Shown here: in pieces, positions 4,221 through 60,696 of the stretch
Layout of the letters: the number at the start of each line of letters is the position of its first letter
Position numbering within the stretch: the stretch's first letter is position 1
Sequence record: LC768500.1
Length of the DNA stretch: 64,000 bases
Reading direction: 5' to 3' (one strand)
The notes under the pieces: generated by a model
Seen by the model: only the letters and a program-made list of their open reading frames with translations
What the model was told of the DNA's origin: nothing
Database searches by the model: none
Program-made: the position numbers and the translations under genes

Positions 4221-5563
4221 TACCCGTTAATATTAGTAACGTCTTAGAACAGGCGAAGCAGGTTGCCGCAACCAAACGCGCTACCATCTCTACGCTCGAG
4301 CTAACTCTTATAACCCCGGAATTACATTATCCCGTTCCTAACGTTCAGAGGCTCTCTAAGAGCTCTAATTTCTTGGAGGACGGGACGGATGTTTGGGCGA
4401 TTAACTTCTTGATGCAGCCTGGCGTTTTCTTAAAACAGATTCTTCCGTACAAAGATAACCTGCTCGTTGACTTAGTTGAGAGCACGGGACTCAATAGAAC
4501 ACTTCGTCGCCTTCGCGCGACAATTCCAATGGACGTTAATCCTCAAACCAGTTCGGATAACAGCGTCTATATTGATCCAGGCGTATTAGATCAAAACATG
4601 GTCGTTCCCGTCACGCTTATTTTGATCGATACAGTATACGAACAGTTACGTAACCAACCACTACTTGATAATTACTTAATGGCTACAACCAAAGACGTTT
4701 TGCATAATGTCTGGAGTCAACAAGGTCACGCCATTCAGTCTAACGGGGTTAACAAGTTTAAAGGAGTTGACATTGAAGAACCCACCGATAACCCTAGAGT
4801 TTATCGGCAGATTATGGTCAAGCACGGGACGCGCCTGACTCGTTTCGCGGACTATCTTCAGAATGAAGAAGGGCTGGGAATTTATACCCGTGGGTGCGGG
4901 TCTTTCTATCGAGACGGAATTTGGTACGTCTTTCCTATTTGTAAGCCCGAAAGATACGGTGCGGTGAAAAAGTCCTTAGATATTTATAAGTTCCCTGAGG
5001 ACGTTTTACCAGTAACAGAGCAAACGTATGGGACGACGGCGAACTCCACGTTAATACTTTCTACAGGTCCATCTAAATTGCTTGACGGTACTGATAACCT
5101 GAGACAGAATTTTGGTGCTGGTCAACAGATCATTTCTTCGGATGCGATTTCAGGAGAAGCTGGGTCACACTATAACAACGGAGCGAGTGTCACTCTACGA
5201 GCAGAGAAAGTGACTGAATACAGAACCACGCAGCGTGCTTCGGGGCAGGAGCTTATCGACATCAACCCCACTCCTACCAATAATGTTTTTAAAGAGATAA
5301 CTAAAAACGCCATGAGGGACTGCAAGGTACTGGAATTGAATTGGAGTAACTCCAATCCTTTTCTCATTACCCCAGGGGCGCCGGTTAAGTATTATTTCCT
5401 TAATGAACAAGGGACCCTCACCATCCAGGAAGGTACGGTAATATCGGAGCAGACCACCTATTACTCTGATTCGACCAGACCCCTCACACCGTTTAGAAAG
5501 AACTCTGTTCTGACCATACTCCTGCTCCCTATTCAGAATAGCACGATAACCCCGAACAATTAA
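4217..5563 (+). CDS. virion structural protein, possibly baseplate hub-like
   Basis: 448 aa, last gene of the operon; beta-rich pattern; hub assignment is inferred from size and synteny. Confidence 0.45.
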   Translation: MIPVNISNVLEQAKQVAATKRATISTLELTLITPELHYPVPNVQRLSKSSNFLEDGTDVWAINFLMQPGVFLKQILPYKDNLLVDLVESTGLNRTLRRLRATIPMDVNPQTSSDNSVYIDPGVLDQNMVVPVTLILIDTVYEQLRNQPLLDNYLMATTKDVLHNVWSQQGHAIQSNGVNKFKGVDIEEPTDNPRVYRQIMVKHGTRLTRFADYLQNEEGLGIYTRGCGSFYRDGIWYVFPICKPERYGAVKKSLDIYKFPEDVLPVTEQTYGTTANSTLILSTGPSKLLDGTDNLRQNFGAGQQIISSDAISGEAGSHYNNGASVTLRAEKVTEYRTTQRASGQELIDINPTPTNNVFKEITKNAMRDCKVLELNWSNSNPFLITPGAPVKYYFLNEQGTLTIQEGTVISEQTTYYSDSTRPLTPFRKNSVLTILLLPIQNSTITPNN

Positions 5564-6200: not shown

Positions 6201-6216
6201 TTTAAACCTATATTAC
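6201..6216 (+). promoter_or_regulatory. putative phage early promoter
   Basis: TTTAAACC-TATATTAC; exact phiKZ early consensus TATATTAC at 6209-6216. Confidence 0.7.
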
Positions 6217-11780: not shown

Positions 11781-11797
11781 TTTAAGGACTATATTAT
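11781..11797 (+). promoter_or_regulatory. putative phage early promoter of the nvRNAP operon
   Basis: TTTAAGGAC-TATATTAT; nvRNAP genes are early in phiKZ-like phages. Confidence 0.7.
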
Positions 11798-16979: not shown

Positions 16980-17023
16980 CCCCACCATCCTAGAACCATT
17001 TAATCGATTAAGTTGTTAACATC

Positions 17024-47142: not shown

Positions 47143-47161
47143 ACTACGAGGAAATGAAAAA

Positions 47162-56854: not shown

Positions 56855-57094
56855 ATGAAACTCAAAGATTATCAACATCACGTTTCTATCGTCCAACACG
56901 AAGATGGAAAAGAACTCCCCTATTTAAAACAAAAGACTTACTGTGGGGGTGAACCTGAACCTTGGATGTTCCAAGGCGCTGGGCACGCTATACTGGCGAT
57001 TTCTAATCAAAGCTACACACAACCCTGCCCTGAATGTGTTAAAGCCATACAGACGATTACAGAAGGGTATTTAAAGGAAAATTCCAATGGCTAA
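56855..57094 (+). CDS. small Cys/His-containing protein (possible zinc binder)
   Basis: 79 aa, TYCG...GHA...PCPEC. Confidence 0.65.
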   Translation: MKLKDYQHHVSIVQHEDGKELPYLKQKTYCGGEPEPWMFQGAGHAILAISNQSYTQPCPECVKAIQTITEGYLKENSNG

Positions 57095-57191
57095 ATCCAA
57101 AATGTCCGACTTTATTGATATTGCCGTGCTATTCCTGGTAATATCTCTCGTCTTAACCTTTTTCTTTTACGCTATTATTAAATATGGATAA
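57087..57191 (+). CDS. 34-aa single-TM micro-protein (not in the ORF track)
   Basis: MAKSKMSDFIDIAVLFLVISLVLTFFFYAIIKYG; AAGGA RBS; 8-nt overlaps with both neighbours. Confidence 0.6.
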   Translation: MAKSKMSDFIDIAVLFLVISLVLTFFFYAIIKYG

Positions 57192-57544: not shown

Positions 57545-57576
57545 TACTCCTACTCCCGTAATAGGGAGTAGGAGTA
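57545..57576 (+). terminator. intrinsic terminator
   Basis: TACTCCTACTCCC-gtaata-GGGAGTAGGAGTA, perfect 13-bp stem. Confidence 0.8.
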
Positions 57577-57640: not shown

Positions 57641-57770
57641 CTCTAGCGCAATATATTAGGCCTTCGGCCTAAAGGGCTAGGGTAAGTCTATTCGTTCGTT
57701 TCAGCATCAATCAAGGTATTCGCTACGCTCATACTTTCTTATGCTGATCGATGGGTAGAAAATCTTTCTA
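57641..57770. other. structured non-coding element (three nested/adjacent hairpins)
   Basis: CTAGC..TTAGGCC-ttc-GGCCTAA..GCTAG; TCAGCAT..AAGGTAT-tcgctacgctc-ATACTTT..ATGCTGA; TAGAAA-atc-TTTCTA. Confidence 0.5.
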
Positions 57771-57860
57771 TTTTAGTTAAATACCAGTTAAAACGGGTTT
57801 GGGCGACGTCTTTTTGAAAATTTAACTAGTGGCTATCATCTTGGTACTTAACTTATTTAA

Positions 57861-57877
57861 TTTAAACTCTATATCAT
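57861..57877 (+). promoter_or_regulatory. putative phage early promoter of tnpB
   Basis: TTTAAACTC-TATATCAT, near-identical to the HNH promoter (TTTAAACC-TATATTAC); GGAGGA RBS at 57884-57889. Confidence 0.65.
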
Positions 57878-57896
57878 AAAGTCGGAGGAACTTATT

Positions 57897-59033
57897 ATGT
57901 TTATTTCTAAACGAGGTAAACTCCGGCTCTATAAAGAGGACGTGGAGTTAGTTAATCGCACCTTTGGTTGTCGGAGATTTGTATGGAATCAATTATTGGG
58001 TTTACACAAAGAGCGATATGAAAAATGGAAGGAAAATAATAACTTAGAAAAACCCACAGTTTCTATTTCTGCATTGAGAGAAGATTTTAAACGTATTAGA
58101 TCGGAGCATTCTTGGTTAAATGAAGTAAGTTCTGTTGCTTTATATGAGACCATTACTGATCTTTATAATGCCTTTCAACGCTTCTTCAATAATCAATCCG
58201 GTTACCCTAAGTTTAAATCTAAGAGAGGCGCGCAGACTTTTCGTATCACCTCTAGGGTCAACCTGCGGGTCGAGGGTAATATGGTTAGGTTACCCAAATC
58301 CAATTGTTATTCGATATTCTCTAAAAATACTGTCTTAAATGATCCTTCTTCTTATACCGTTACTAGGGATAGCGTAGGCGATTATTTCATCTCTTTCGTA
58401 GACCAAATTGATGAGATAGAGCCAGAACCCGAAAGTAAGGGCAAACATGTAGGGATCGATTTAGGAATTAAATCCTTAGCGATTGTTAAACCTAGTAAGG
58501 GAGAACCTTGGGAATTAATCAACCCTAGAACGTATACGAAATATCAAAAACGCAGAACGACGCTACAACGCCGTTTAATGAAAAAGAAGAAAGGGAGTAA
58601 AAACAGAAACAAAGCTAGAATTAAATTAGCGAAGTTAGAACGTAAAGTTGCTAATATTCGTAAAGATCTTTTACACAAATTTACGACTACACTGATTAAA
58701 GAAAACCAAATGATCAGTATCGAAGATTTAAATGTAAAAGGGATGTTAAAAAACCATAGCTTGGCTAAACATATTCAGGATTGTTCTTTTGGTACAATTA
58801 GAACGATGCTGGAATATAAAGCTAAACGTTATACTCGAAATAAAACGATCACCATCGTTAATCGGTTCTTTGCAAGCACTCAACTTTGTTCTCAGTGCGG
58901 TGTTCTCCCTAAAGAGCGTATCGGACTTAAAATCAGGAACTGGGTATGTTGGAACTGCGGCACTAAACACGATAGAGATATTAACGCTGCTACGAATATC
59001 CTTAACCAAGGATTACGTTTAACAACCTCCTAG
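57897..59033 (+). CDS. tnpB: TnpB RNA-guided endonuclease (IS200/IS605 OrfB family), no adjacent TnpA
   Basis: N-terminal RTFGCRRFVWN; RuvC-I VGIDLG, RuvC-II IEDL, zinc finger CSQCG...CWNCG, RuvC-III DRDINAA; all three catalytic residues intact. Confidence 0.93.
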   Translation: MFISKRGKLRLYKEDVELVNRTFGCRRFVWNQLLGLHKERYEKWKENNNLEKPTVSISALREDFKRIRSEHSWLNEVSSVALYETITDLYNAFQRFFNNQSGYPKFKSKRGAQTFRITSRVNLRVEGNMVRLPKSNCYSIFSKNTVLNDPSSYTVTRDSVGDYFISFVDQIDEIEPEPESKGKHVGIDLGIKSLAIVKPSKGEPWELINPRTYTKYQKRRTTLQRRLMKKKKGSKNRNKARIKLAKLERKVANIRKDLLHKFTTTLIKENQMISIEDLNVKGMLKNHSLAKHIQDCSFGTIRTMLEYKAKRYTRNKTITIVNRFFASTQLCSQCGVLPKERIGLKIRNWVCWNCGTKHDRDINAATNILNQGLRLTTS

Positions 59034-59305
59034 GTTAAGGGTATTTATTACCCTTGGTCTGAGGGGAAGTTAAGCCTGTGGAGACAAGTTGCAGTAAGGA
59101 CTTTCTATGAAGCAGGAAGTTGAAATATACAAGACATCTTACACTCACCCATGCAACCTGGAGAGAAACCCCGACTGAACAAAGTTGTTTATTCCTTCTC
59201 AGGGGAATAAACAGTTCGTCGGCTAAAGACATAGGATGTTTTATGATCAGTAAAGAAATACGATAATCTAAACTTATTAGTTCAAACACTGTAATCTAGG
59301 AGATA
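59034..59305 (+). ncRNA. TnpB omega-RNA scaffold plus putative guide
   Basis: conserved scaffold signature GCCTGTGGAG...TCTATGAAGCAGGAA; several G-U-containing stems; probable scaffold end TAGTTCAA at 59278-59285; exact boundaries uncertain. Confidence 0.7.
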
Positions 59306-59308
59306 ACC

Positions 59309-59425
59309 ATGAATATCGTAATGCCACTAAAGCTACTCGGAGGGTTACTTATCCTGGGAGTGGGTTTTGGATTACTGGTTTATCTCATCGTTAAACTCTC
59401 TGTTAAAATGGCGTATAAGAAATGA
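59309..59425 (+). CDS. 38-aa single-TM micro-protein (not in the ORF track)
   Basis: MNIVMPLKLLGGLLILGVGFGLLVYLIVKLSVKMAYKK; AGGAG RBS; ATGA overlap with the next gene. Confidence 0.65.
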   Translation: MNIVMPLKLLGGLLILGVGFGLLVYLIVKLSVKMAYKK

Positions 59426-59889
59426 GTGAAGAAGAGTTATCATTAGGTTATATTTCAGTTAAAGTCATTCCCACTCAGGAAGACATTCTTAAAGATAAGG
59501 TGTTGGATGCGGGATGTCTTCCGTTAGATGAAGGGGCATATCACGCTACTCTTATTTTTGATATTCATCAAGATGGCGTGATCCCTAACGTACCTATGAT
59601 CCCTGAAAAGATCTTCGAGGGAAAGGTTATTGGAATCAAGGAACTCGGAGAGCGTAAAGGAGATATTATCTCAGCCGTTGTACTCGAACTGGATTCTCCT
59701 GAATTGACAGAAGAGCATGATCGGTTAATACAATGTGGGTATGGTCATTCCTATCCGGATTACATCCCCCATATTTCGCTCGCTTACAAGGTCACAGAAG
59801 AGCAAATGGAAGATCTCAAACGACAGTGTGAGTCGCTTATTGGTAAAACGTTCTACTTATCCGGAGAGAGCATCGACTGGATAGATTAA
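59422..59889 (+). CDS. acb1: Acb1-like 2H phosphodiesterase (anti-CBASS; T4 gp57B family)
   Basis: two HxT/S motifs (YHATL, PHISL); VVLELDSPELTEEH...YGHSYPDYIPHISLAY pattern; C-terminal DW; 155 aa. Confidence 0.82.
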   Translation: MSEEELSLGYISVKVIPTQEDILKDKVLDAGCLPLDEGAYHATLIFDIHQDGVIPNVPMIPEKIFEGKVIGIKELGERKGDIISAVVLELDSPELTEEHDRLIQCGYGHSYPDYIPHISLAYKVTEEQMEDLKRQCESLIGKTFYLSGESIDWID

Positions 59890-60331: not shown

Positions 60332-60372
60332 TCTTATGCAATATTTTTAATCTTAAAACGTGGGGTGGGTAA

Positions 60373-60696
60373 ATGACGTACGATGAAGTCGAGAAATATC
60401 TGGAAATGGGAGAGGCTATCTCTAAGGGTAGTTGGAAAGCTAACGAAGCGGTTTATTTAGAGCCGACGACGTTACTTAATCCAGCGCACTATCCTGAGTG
60501 TTTAAAGGCCGCGGGTATTAACTCCCTTTTGAGAGTCGATCGACATTTAGTGCGTGTTACCGCGAGTAACACTGTTGAGCGTTTTATTCCCAACATTGTA
60601 GAAAGAAAAGAAAACGATTGGTACGTTAAGAGTTATACCTTCGAACAAAATAAAGCATTGCCAGAACATAATCAAACCCAAGAAGAAGCTGCATAA
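60373..60696 (+). CDS. divergent DUF2829/Tad2-like signal-sponge protein
   Basis: MTYDEV..YLEMGEAISKGSW (cf. M[ST]F.EA...LK.G..V.R.GW) and RVTASN...FIPNIVERKENDW (cf. KTADN...WVPSQTD.LAEDW); reference pattern recalled, not searched. Confidence 0.62.
   Translation: MTYDEVEKYLEMGEAISKGSWKANEAVYLEPTTLLNPAHYPECLKAAGINSLLRVDRHLVRVTASNTVERFIPNIVERKENDWYVKSYTFEQNKALPEHNQTQEEAA

Follow-up and report, generated by a model that had tools for sequence, protein, structure and literature searches.

A solo TnpB cassette in the jumbo phage phiKp_32, a candidate RNA-guided homing element

The tnpB_1 cassette and the locus it interrupts

We analyzed a stretch of 64,000 nucleotides (the window) of the Klebsiella phage phiKp_32, corresponding to record positions 62001-126000 of LC768500.1 (251,460 bp; 100% match), which carries an inserted cassette with a tnpB gene, named here tnpB_1. 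phiKp_32 was described at its isolation as a jumbo phage with 95.9% identity to phage Miami (PMC10581060). Since Miamivirus has been placed in Chimalliviridae, the nucleus-forming phiKZ-like family, the label 'phiKZ-like jumbo phage', attached to this DNA in a preliminary interpretation made from the letters alone (the sequence-only reading), is fair for this close relative of Miami. For comparison we used seven relatives devoid of tnpB at the same locus: Miami, BUCTxx100, KPN8, YC1, VB_ZK_P1 and the metagenomic contigs L020 and L025. Positions given below are those of the window unless otherwise indicated, and the features are collected in Table 1.

In all seven relatives the sequence runs from position 57745 directly into 59138, which leaves an insert of ~1.39 kb in phiKp_32 (57746-59136/7, the dinucleotide CT being common to both junctions). 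The insert splits a resident non-coding element of ~190 nt that begins at the promoter-like ATATATTA (57651) and ends in a hairpin. This element is nearly invariant in four complete relatives while the neighboring genes there differ by up to 12%. No Rfam family fits the uninterrupted Miami intergenic region, where matches at E<=5 stayed at chance level, and the element may be a phage small RNA.

Homology across 12 cassette copies ends at the same ...GACA (59136), and the guide is predicted to begin with the resident base that follows. This 20-nt guide is perfectly matched at the uninterrupted site of Miami, BUCTxx100, KPN8, YC1, L020 and L025, and with a single mismatch, at target position 20, in VB_ZK_P1. 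It is unique in phiKp_32, and a viral contig collection searched with the guide and with TnpB peptide patterns returned no match. Among bacterial genomes (one per species), the guide matched one mis-binned phage contig and one other sequence without similarity to the window, about one such match being expected by chance at that collection size. These searches lend no support to a nuclease repurposed against host or competitor DNA, as the sequence-only reading had suggested. That reading had also placed the guide at ACACTGTAATCTAGGAGATA (59286-59305), which proved to be resident phage DNA, present in all TnpB-less relatives, ~150 nt beyond the insert and immediately 5′ to the ATG at 59309; its range for the element, 57861-59305, started 115 nt late and ended ~170 nt too far. 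The alignment with tnpB-less relatives that it proposed as a check did define the junction, at 59136/59137 and not at ACACTGTAATCTAGGAGATA. In annotating such elements, it is hence the insertion boundary that locates the guide, and not whichever hairpin comes next downstream.

Table 1. Features of the tnpB_1 locus and unoccupied cassette sites in the window
Feature	Position	Strand	Remarks
Unoccupied site inside a resident promoter-like core	11791..11797	+	VB_ZK_P1 has a cassette there
Unoccupied site	17009..17017	+	BUCTxx100 has its cassette there
Unoccupied site	47148..47155	+	contigs L017/L018 have a related cassette there
Left half of conserved resident non-coding element split by the insertion	57651..57745	+	right half ~59138-59240
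Left flank CTTATGCT	57738..57745	+	directly before the guide match in the uninterrupted allele; candidate target-adjacent motif (TTAT/TTATG)
Inserted solo-TnpB cassette	57746..59136 (+/-2 nt)	+	blastn against Miami and BUCTxx100; same uninterrupted site in 7 relatives
Left region of the insert	57746..57896	+	151 nt; not conserved as a transposon end; DNA fold z=-0.44
Promoter-like motif TATATCAT-(6N)-G	57870..57884	+	inside the insert, upstream of tnpB_1
Ribosome-binding site GGAGG	57884..57888	+	8 nt upstream of the tnpB_1 ATG
tnpB_1	57897..59033	+	378 aa; intact RuvC D188/E276/D361 and CxxC...CxxC zinc finger
Predicted omega-RNA scaffold	58990..59136	+	5′ end provisional; long stem 58995-59012/59028-59045 spans the stop codon
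Predicted guide	59137..59156	+	resident DNA just past the right end; copy-to-copy conservation stops at 59136
Resident 5′ untranslated region and ribosome-binding site of 38-aa gene 59309-59425	59286..59305	+	outside the element; guide proposed by the sequence-only reading
Acb1 (against CBASS, the cyclic oligonucleotide-based antiphage signaling system)	59422..59889	+	Pfam PF23474, 50.3 bits against a cut-off of 27
Unoccupied site	60339..60345	+	contig L020 has a related TnpB cassette there

The tnpB_1 product matched the Pfam models HTH_OrfB_IS605, OrfB_IS605 (RuvC) and Cas12f1-like_TNB at 32, 104 and 71 bits, all above the cut-offs, and aligned end to end with the structures of ISDra2 TnpB (PDB 8h1j/8exa; 366 residues, E=2e-55). 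The residues D188, E276 and D361 and the cysteines C331, C334, C351 and C354 are invariant across 14 copies. Ratios of nonsynonymous to synonymous substitution (dN/dS) between tnpB_1 and nine other copies ranged from 0.09 to 0.27, a tenth comparison being saturated at synonymous sites; judged by these ratios, the gene is under purifying selection. The intact RuvC triad, the zinc finger and the strong ribosome-binding site of the sequence-only reading were all recovered, as was the lack of TnpA or serine recombinase nearby. No TnpA or recombinase is annotated in the 250 kb of the record, where most annotations read 'hypothetical protein' and no direct TnpA search was run, and Pfam gave no match to either in the 10 open reading frames (ORFs) neighboring tnpB_1.

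The 3′ part of the cassette is conserved in a different manner from the coding sequence. The 104 nt from the stop codon to the right end showed 72-98% identity between copies against 44-69% at third codon positions, and RNAalifold returned 32 consensus pairs, including an 18-nt stem (17 predicted pairs) across the tnpB_1 stop codon. In this consensus 94.7% of cells were paired, against 38-58% with slid partners, and 12 pairs carried compensatory changes, against 2-6 in slid controls; folded singly, the tnpB_1 scaffold gave z=-2.97. Rfam had nothing at the gathering threshold over the whole window and, at E<=5 around the element, chance-level matches only. These comparisons indicate a conserved and covarying RNA, the 3′ limit of which coincides exactly with the insertion boundary. 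An omega-RNA had been noted downstream of the gene and is predicted here in this form, with a guide other than the one then proposed.

The tail of this RNA (59034-59136) is 92-98% identical to those of the L020, L021 and L006 copies, the proteins of which are only 63-68% identical to tnpB_1, and the closest proteins (85-87%) carry another tail type. Tail identity being out of step with protein identity, recombination between TnpB cassettes is suggested.

At the other end, neither structure nor conservation was detected by folding or by comparison of copies, in line with the absence of a recognizable left end that had been noted beforehand. Only the last 45-100 nt of the left region are common to some copies: 57795-57896 is shared with the L025 copy and ~57850-57896 with others. 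The promoter-like motif of this region has the form of the early promoters that the virion polymerase uses in phiKZ-related phages; for AR9, the consensus ends with TATATTAT-(6N)-G+1 (PMC5312081). Its core is one mismatch from CTATATTA, and single mismatches can inactivate AR9-type early promoters (PMC5312081). In phiKp_32 the 8-mer CTATATTA has seven non-coding occurrences against a single coding one, and ~20 intergenic copies of the core come after a T-run and before genes, on the coding strand. Across the whole phage the motif reads as a T-run, a few bases and then CTATATTA[T/C], for example at 6208, 11789 and 60782, almost exclusively on the coding strand. Thus, of the phage-type early promoter proposed for tnpB_1, the motif is present and the promoter role is plausible, its core being one mismatch off.

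Related cassettes and their junctions

phiKp_32 carries a second TnpB, tnpB_2 (record 147036..148172), overlooked in the sequence-only reading, which lies 27 kb away, outside the window, with 63% amino acid identity to tnpB_1. Altogether, related cassettes were located at 14 distinct positions in Miami-like backbones. phiKp_32 accounts for two of them, VB_ZK_P1 for at least two, Miami and BUCTxx100 for one apiece and metagenomic contigs for eight. Contig L034 shares the Miami site, so that the contigs contribute nine insertions and eight new sites. Five of the 14 sites are present unoccupied within the window. At all 14, cassettes are present or absent among close relatives in otherwise collinear intergenic DNA, as is the case for free-standing homing endonuclease genes. 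The flanks are 92-98% identical between phages and the TnpB proteins 63-87% identical, with synonymous divergence saturated; a diverse set of cassettes has therefore reached near-identical genomes in recent time.

The tnpB_1 protein belongs to a clade (at least 48% identity, ~26 clusters) set off by a step from the next relatives (at most 45%). In 16/16 contexts of the clade that we examined, TnpB stands alone among phage-like ORFs, co-oriented with its neighbors, with no transposase domain on record. More widely, TnpB homologues were found in 420 of 50,697 phage records. In one relative genome, a 252,837-bp contig, TnpB (protein P0016) is a decayed copy cut down to 254 aa, with 81% identity over 67% of the query. 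TnpB is present with no TnpA within 2-2.5 kb also in Klebsiella phage FBKp34, Vibrio phage 501E54-1 and Clostridium phage c-st (L029, L030 and L035).

The term 'domesticated', used in the sequence-only reading, does not fit: presence or absence among near-identical phages, together with 14 sites, indicates an active selfish element and not a domesticated gene, and the intact triad and the polymorphic locus do not fit a nuclease-dead derivative. A passenger that is inactive at present, or a regulator acting independently of the nuclease (a TnpB-derived repressor, for example), would agree with an insertion at the tnpB_1 site in one genome only and with the lack of any direct sign of tnpB_1 activity. 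However, the invariance of triad and zinc finger in 14 copies, dN/dS well below 1, an RNA scaffold conserved far above synonymous sites and a locus not fixed at one site make either of these very improbable.

We then compared occupied with empty sites. The right end is constant across copies, and the left boundary falls anywhere from 5 to 151 nt before the ATG. Apparent target duplications of 2, 2, 7, 7, 8, 9, 9, 9 and 123 bp start at the right-end junction, and at other junctions 18, 38, 43 or 214 bp of resident DNA are missing. The longest duplication, in L021, comprises the last 41 codons of the upstream gene on either side of the cassette (L021:2791-2913 and 4244-4366). The left duplicate is recoded, its DNA being 76% identical with the protein kept, and mismatches the guide from the 7th base; the right one is of the resident type and serves as guide. 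The flanks of this copy are 87% (left) and 96% (right) identical to phiKp_32. At tnpB_1 itself, no clear co-conversion tract was seen. The L025 cassette lies inside a small ORF upstream of Acb1, with 38 bp of resident DNA missing and its left junction within 8 nt that are identical in the resident gene and in a left region of the tnpB_1 type. L025 (SABI01000451.1), a 1.8-kb contig binned as a Spirochaetia metagenome-assembled genome, is itself a Miami-like phage fragment. In two further copies (L033:3725-3760 and L004:4240-4260), the downstream resident gene, the own start region of which is displaced or lost, takes its ribosome-binding site and an in-frame ATG from the right end of the cassette.

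IS200/IS605 insertion sequences are defined by hairpins at both ends and by a fixed tetra- or pentanucleotide target without target duplication (PMC13565253). Subterminal hairpins at both ends were not found here, the left region being unstructured and unconserved, nor was a fixed target without duplication, given the duplications and deletions at the junctions. As judged from their sequences, the junctions are unlike the products of a Y1 transposase (TnpA peel-and-paste) and are as expected from break repair off a cassette-bearing template, with homology or microhomology on the left. The cassette could nonetheless belong to the ordinary non-autonomous IS200/IS605 elements, as one of IS1341 type, moved by a TnpA that the host or another element provides in trans, with TnpB guarding against loss after excision. 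Its Pfam architecture and PDB match are those of an IS200/IS605 TnpB, TnpB-only IS1341 elements form a recognized group (PMC13565253), phiKp_32 harbors two copies, and solo TnpB is common in phages, as the 420 records illustrate. Such an element is unlikely in view of the variable left boundary (5-151 nt before the ATG) with no conserved or stable hairpin, of the duplications (2-9 bp and 123 bp) or deletions (18-214 bp) at junctions, of TnpA seen in 0/16 contexts by annotation, and of a phage nucleus that largely excludes host proteins (PMC11087766).

Three other modes were set aside. IS607-type mobility by a serine recombinase does not fit the duplications of 7-9 bp and 123 bp. RNA-templated insertion, prompted by the constant 3′ end, the variable 5′ end and the variable duplications, was discarded since right flanks differ between copies (reverse transcriptase was not looked for). 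Finally, an IStron (group I intron with TnpB) was ruled out, as no Rfam intron matched around tnpB_1 at the gathering threshold or at E<=5.

The bases preceding the guide match were read at 13 empty sites: TTAT three times, CTAC, CTAT and AAAT twice each, and ATAC, CGAT, TCAC and ACGT once each. The 4-5 nt at this position are thus A/T-rich and mostly end with A-T or A-C, given 1 nt of slack at the right end. For tnpB_1, TTAT(G) at 57739-57743 is the candidate target-adjacent motif (TAM).

Proposed homing into TnpB-less relatives

We consider, with a probability of roughly 0.6, that the tnpB_1 cassette is a free-standing RNA-guided homing-nuclease cassette, made of TnpB and omega-RNA without transposase or defined left end. 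As a selfish mobile element, it probably spreads by copying into relatives that lack it. As the guide matches the uninterrupted allele of 7/7 relatives, homing into, or cutting of, TnpB-less relatives would be the most economical function. The phage's own polymerase would transcribe the cassette, from the promoter-like motif of the left region and/or by read-through, and TnpB would bind the structured RNA of 58990-59136, the 3′ extension from 59137 acting as guide. Upon co-infection with a relative without the insertion, the complex would cut the uninterrupted site, in which the TAM-like TTAT(G) is followed by the guide match, and phage recombination would use the phiKp_32 allele as template to repair the break, so that the cassette is copied together with nearby markers such as Acb1; alternatively, the cut genome would be lost. 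The occupied allele would be immune because the right end of the cassette, and not the TAM, precedes the guide match. Expression of the cassette, the TAM, DNA cleavage, passage into the phage nucleus and the copying itself are inferred. RNA-guided homing or interference between phages had been the proposal of the sequence-only reading, which had the kind of system right, the guide matching TnpB-less relatives, and its guide and junction wrong.

Several points weigh against homing by this cassette. Expression of tnpB_1 and cleavage by its product are predicted from sequence, and no single TAM can be derived from the 13 empty sites without ad hoc shifts of 1 nt. The absence of TnpA relies on the record annotations, mostly 'hypothetical protein'. 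Only one genome has an insertion at the tnpB_1 site, so that spread at that site is not observed. In addition, chimallivirus nuclei import proteins selectively (PMC11087766, PMC12908238), and access to competitor DNA is therefore not assured.

In a related explanation the cassette is a weapon between phages and not a drive: its cut would mainly harm competing relatives (interference competition) and copying would be incidental. The guide does match a strongly conserved non-coding element in all relatives, and chimalliviruses offer a precedent with the PhiPA3 intron endonuclease (PMC11620839, PMC12908238). That element is split in phiKp_32 itself, however, and is therefore dispensable, so that a cut, once mended, would not have to kill; the number of occupied sites moreover argues for frequent copying. 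We regard a cassette that serves mainly as a weapon as decidedly unlikely.

Homing into an existing empty allele is distinct from movement to new sites. From the 14 junctions we built a tentative model, which we hold to be doubtful, in which TnpB-only cassettes of nucleus-forming jumbo phages relocate without transposase, by a cut at a target-like site and repair from the cassette-bearing genome. Such relocation would predict a precise right junction, a left junction at short homology and a short duplication of the target start. In one subclade, the target resemblance resides in the repeated early-promoter core: the left junction lies at the core in four sites, and A(C/T)ATTATCT directly follows the right end in three copies at three sites, that is, in 3/3 sites with the right junction seen. 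Across the whole set, the left junction coincides exactly with the 3′ edge of a resident promoter-like core in five copies (tnpB_2, ZKP1-b, L032, L033 and the Miami/L034 site). Each move would arm the nuclease anew, for the site just entered, since the flank serves as template for the guide. Features of some copies that would spare the host phage, namely the right-end ribosome-binding site with in-frame ATG and the recoded L021 duplicate no longer matching the guide, would also fit relocation.

Downstream of the cassette, a 38-aa membrane-like ORF is followed by Acb1 and, 1 kb further, by a Tad2-like ORF (60373-60696; 23.4 bits, just under the cut-off of 25). Acb1 and this ORF form a small anti-defence cluster, and the linked anti-defence genes announced in the sequence-only reading were thus found next to tnpB_1. 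Three phages have TnpB cassettes at three points within 1.3 kb around Acb1 (tnpB_1, L025 and L020). As other TnpB sites are scattered over the genome, we claim no specific association with Acb1.

Other differences were noted along the window. At 57087-57095, phiKp_32 misses a ~0.9-kb gene (297 aa, Miami gene 076) that is present in Miami, BUCTxx100, KPN8, YC1 and contig L020; VB_ZK_P1 has two other genes at this point. A hairpin of CTCCTACTCCC/GGGAGTAGGAG recurs genome-wide, at 57545-57576 and at many intergenic sites. In non-coding DNA its 8-mers rank among the most enriched, a terminator is annotated at this point in Miami, and the hairpins look like a phage-specific terminator family. Lastly, BUCTxx100 (L002/L006, OR529409.1) is filed as a Stenotrophomonas phage, yet is ~96% identical to Klebsiella phages over the compared regions, and its host label may be worth a check.

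Relation to known systems

Cas12 descends from TnpB, the usual explanation of which is that it assists TnpA transposons. The Miami-like lineage offers a natural case for the persistence and spread of the very many TnpB copies that lack TnpA. With near-identical backbones, divergent TnpB alleles, 14 sites and junctions unlike those of TnpA, TnpA-independent spread becomes testable by sequence surveys alone. Protein homing endonucleases are known as inter-phage weapons in chimalliviruses (PMC11620839, PMC12908238); a 2025 review of these phages treats homing endonucleases, not transposon nucleases, as weapons (PMC12908238), and we found no paper on TnpB in Chimalliviridae. Few nucleases are candidates for mediating conflict between co-infecting chimalliviruses; the cassette would join them as an RNA-guided one, and the anti-defence genes adjoining tnpB_1 could hitch-hike with it. 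The sequence-only reading saw here an undescribed system. The concept of TnpB as a nuclease for homing has nevertheless been published, together with its non-restorative form in which co-infecting phages or plasmids are the recipients (PMC13565253), and the solo cassette in chimalliviruses is a variant of it.

Compared with TnpB/omega-RNA of ISDra2 (IS200/IS605; PDB 8h1j, 8exa), the phiKp_32 cassette has the same domains and catalytic residues over the 366-residue alignment, and similarly a guide RNA encoded at the 3′ end of the gene and the right end, its guide templated by the flank. It differs by the lack of a TnpA partner and of a hairpin left end, by duplications or deletions at junctions, and by close relatives that are all in phages. 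IS1341-type elements likewise encode TnpB alone but count as members of IS200/IS605 in which both ends are intact, whereas only the right end is defined here.

The free-standing homing endonuclease genes of T-even phages (Seg, Mob; intronless homing) resemble the cassette in being intergenic, co-oriented and present or absent among close relatives, with expected copying into the empty allele and co-conversion of neighbors. In phiKp_32, target recognition would instead use a flank-templated RNA guide, hence a new specificity per insertion. The intron-encoded endonuclease gp210 of PhiPA3 is similarly a nuclease of a nucleus-forming phage aimed at the unoccupied allele of a related phage; it is, however, a protein-guided HNH enzyme in a group I intron, and no intron was detected at tnpB_1. 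A further parallel is the non-restorative homing, or gene drive, of TnpB in a plasmid population (PMC13565253 and its ref. 89), a TnpA-independent spread into homologous DNA without the insertion. There it was shown for IS605 on plasmids and is theoretical for phages; phiKp_32 provides a natural polymorphism that fits the pattern, as distinct from a demonstration.

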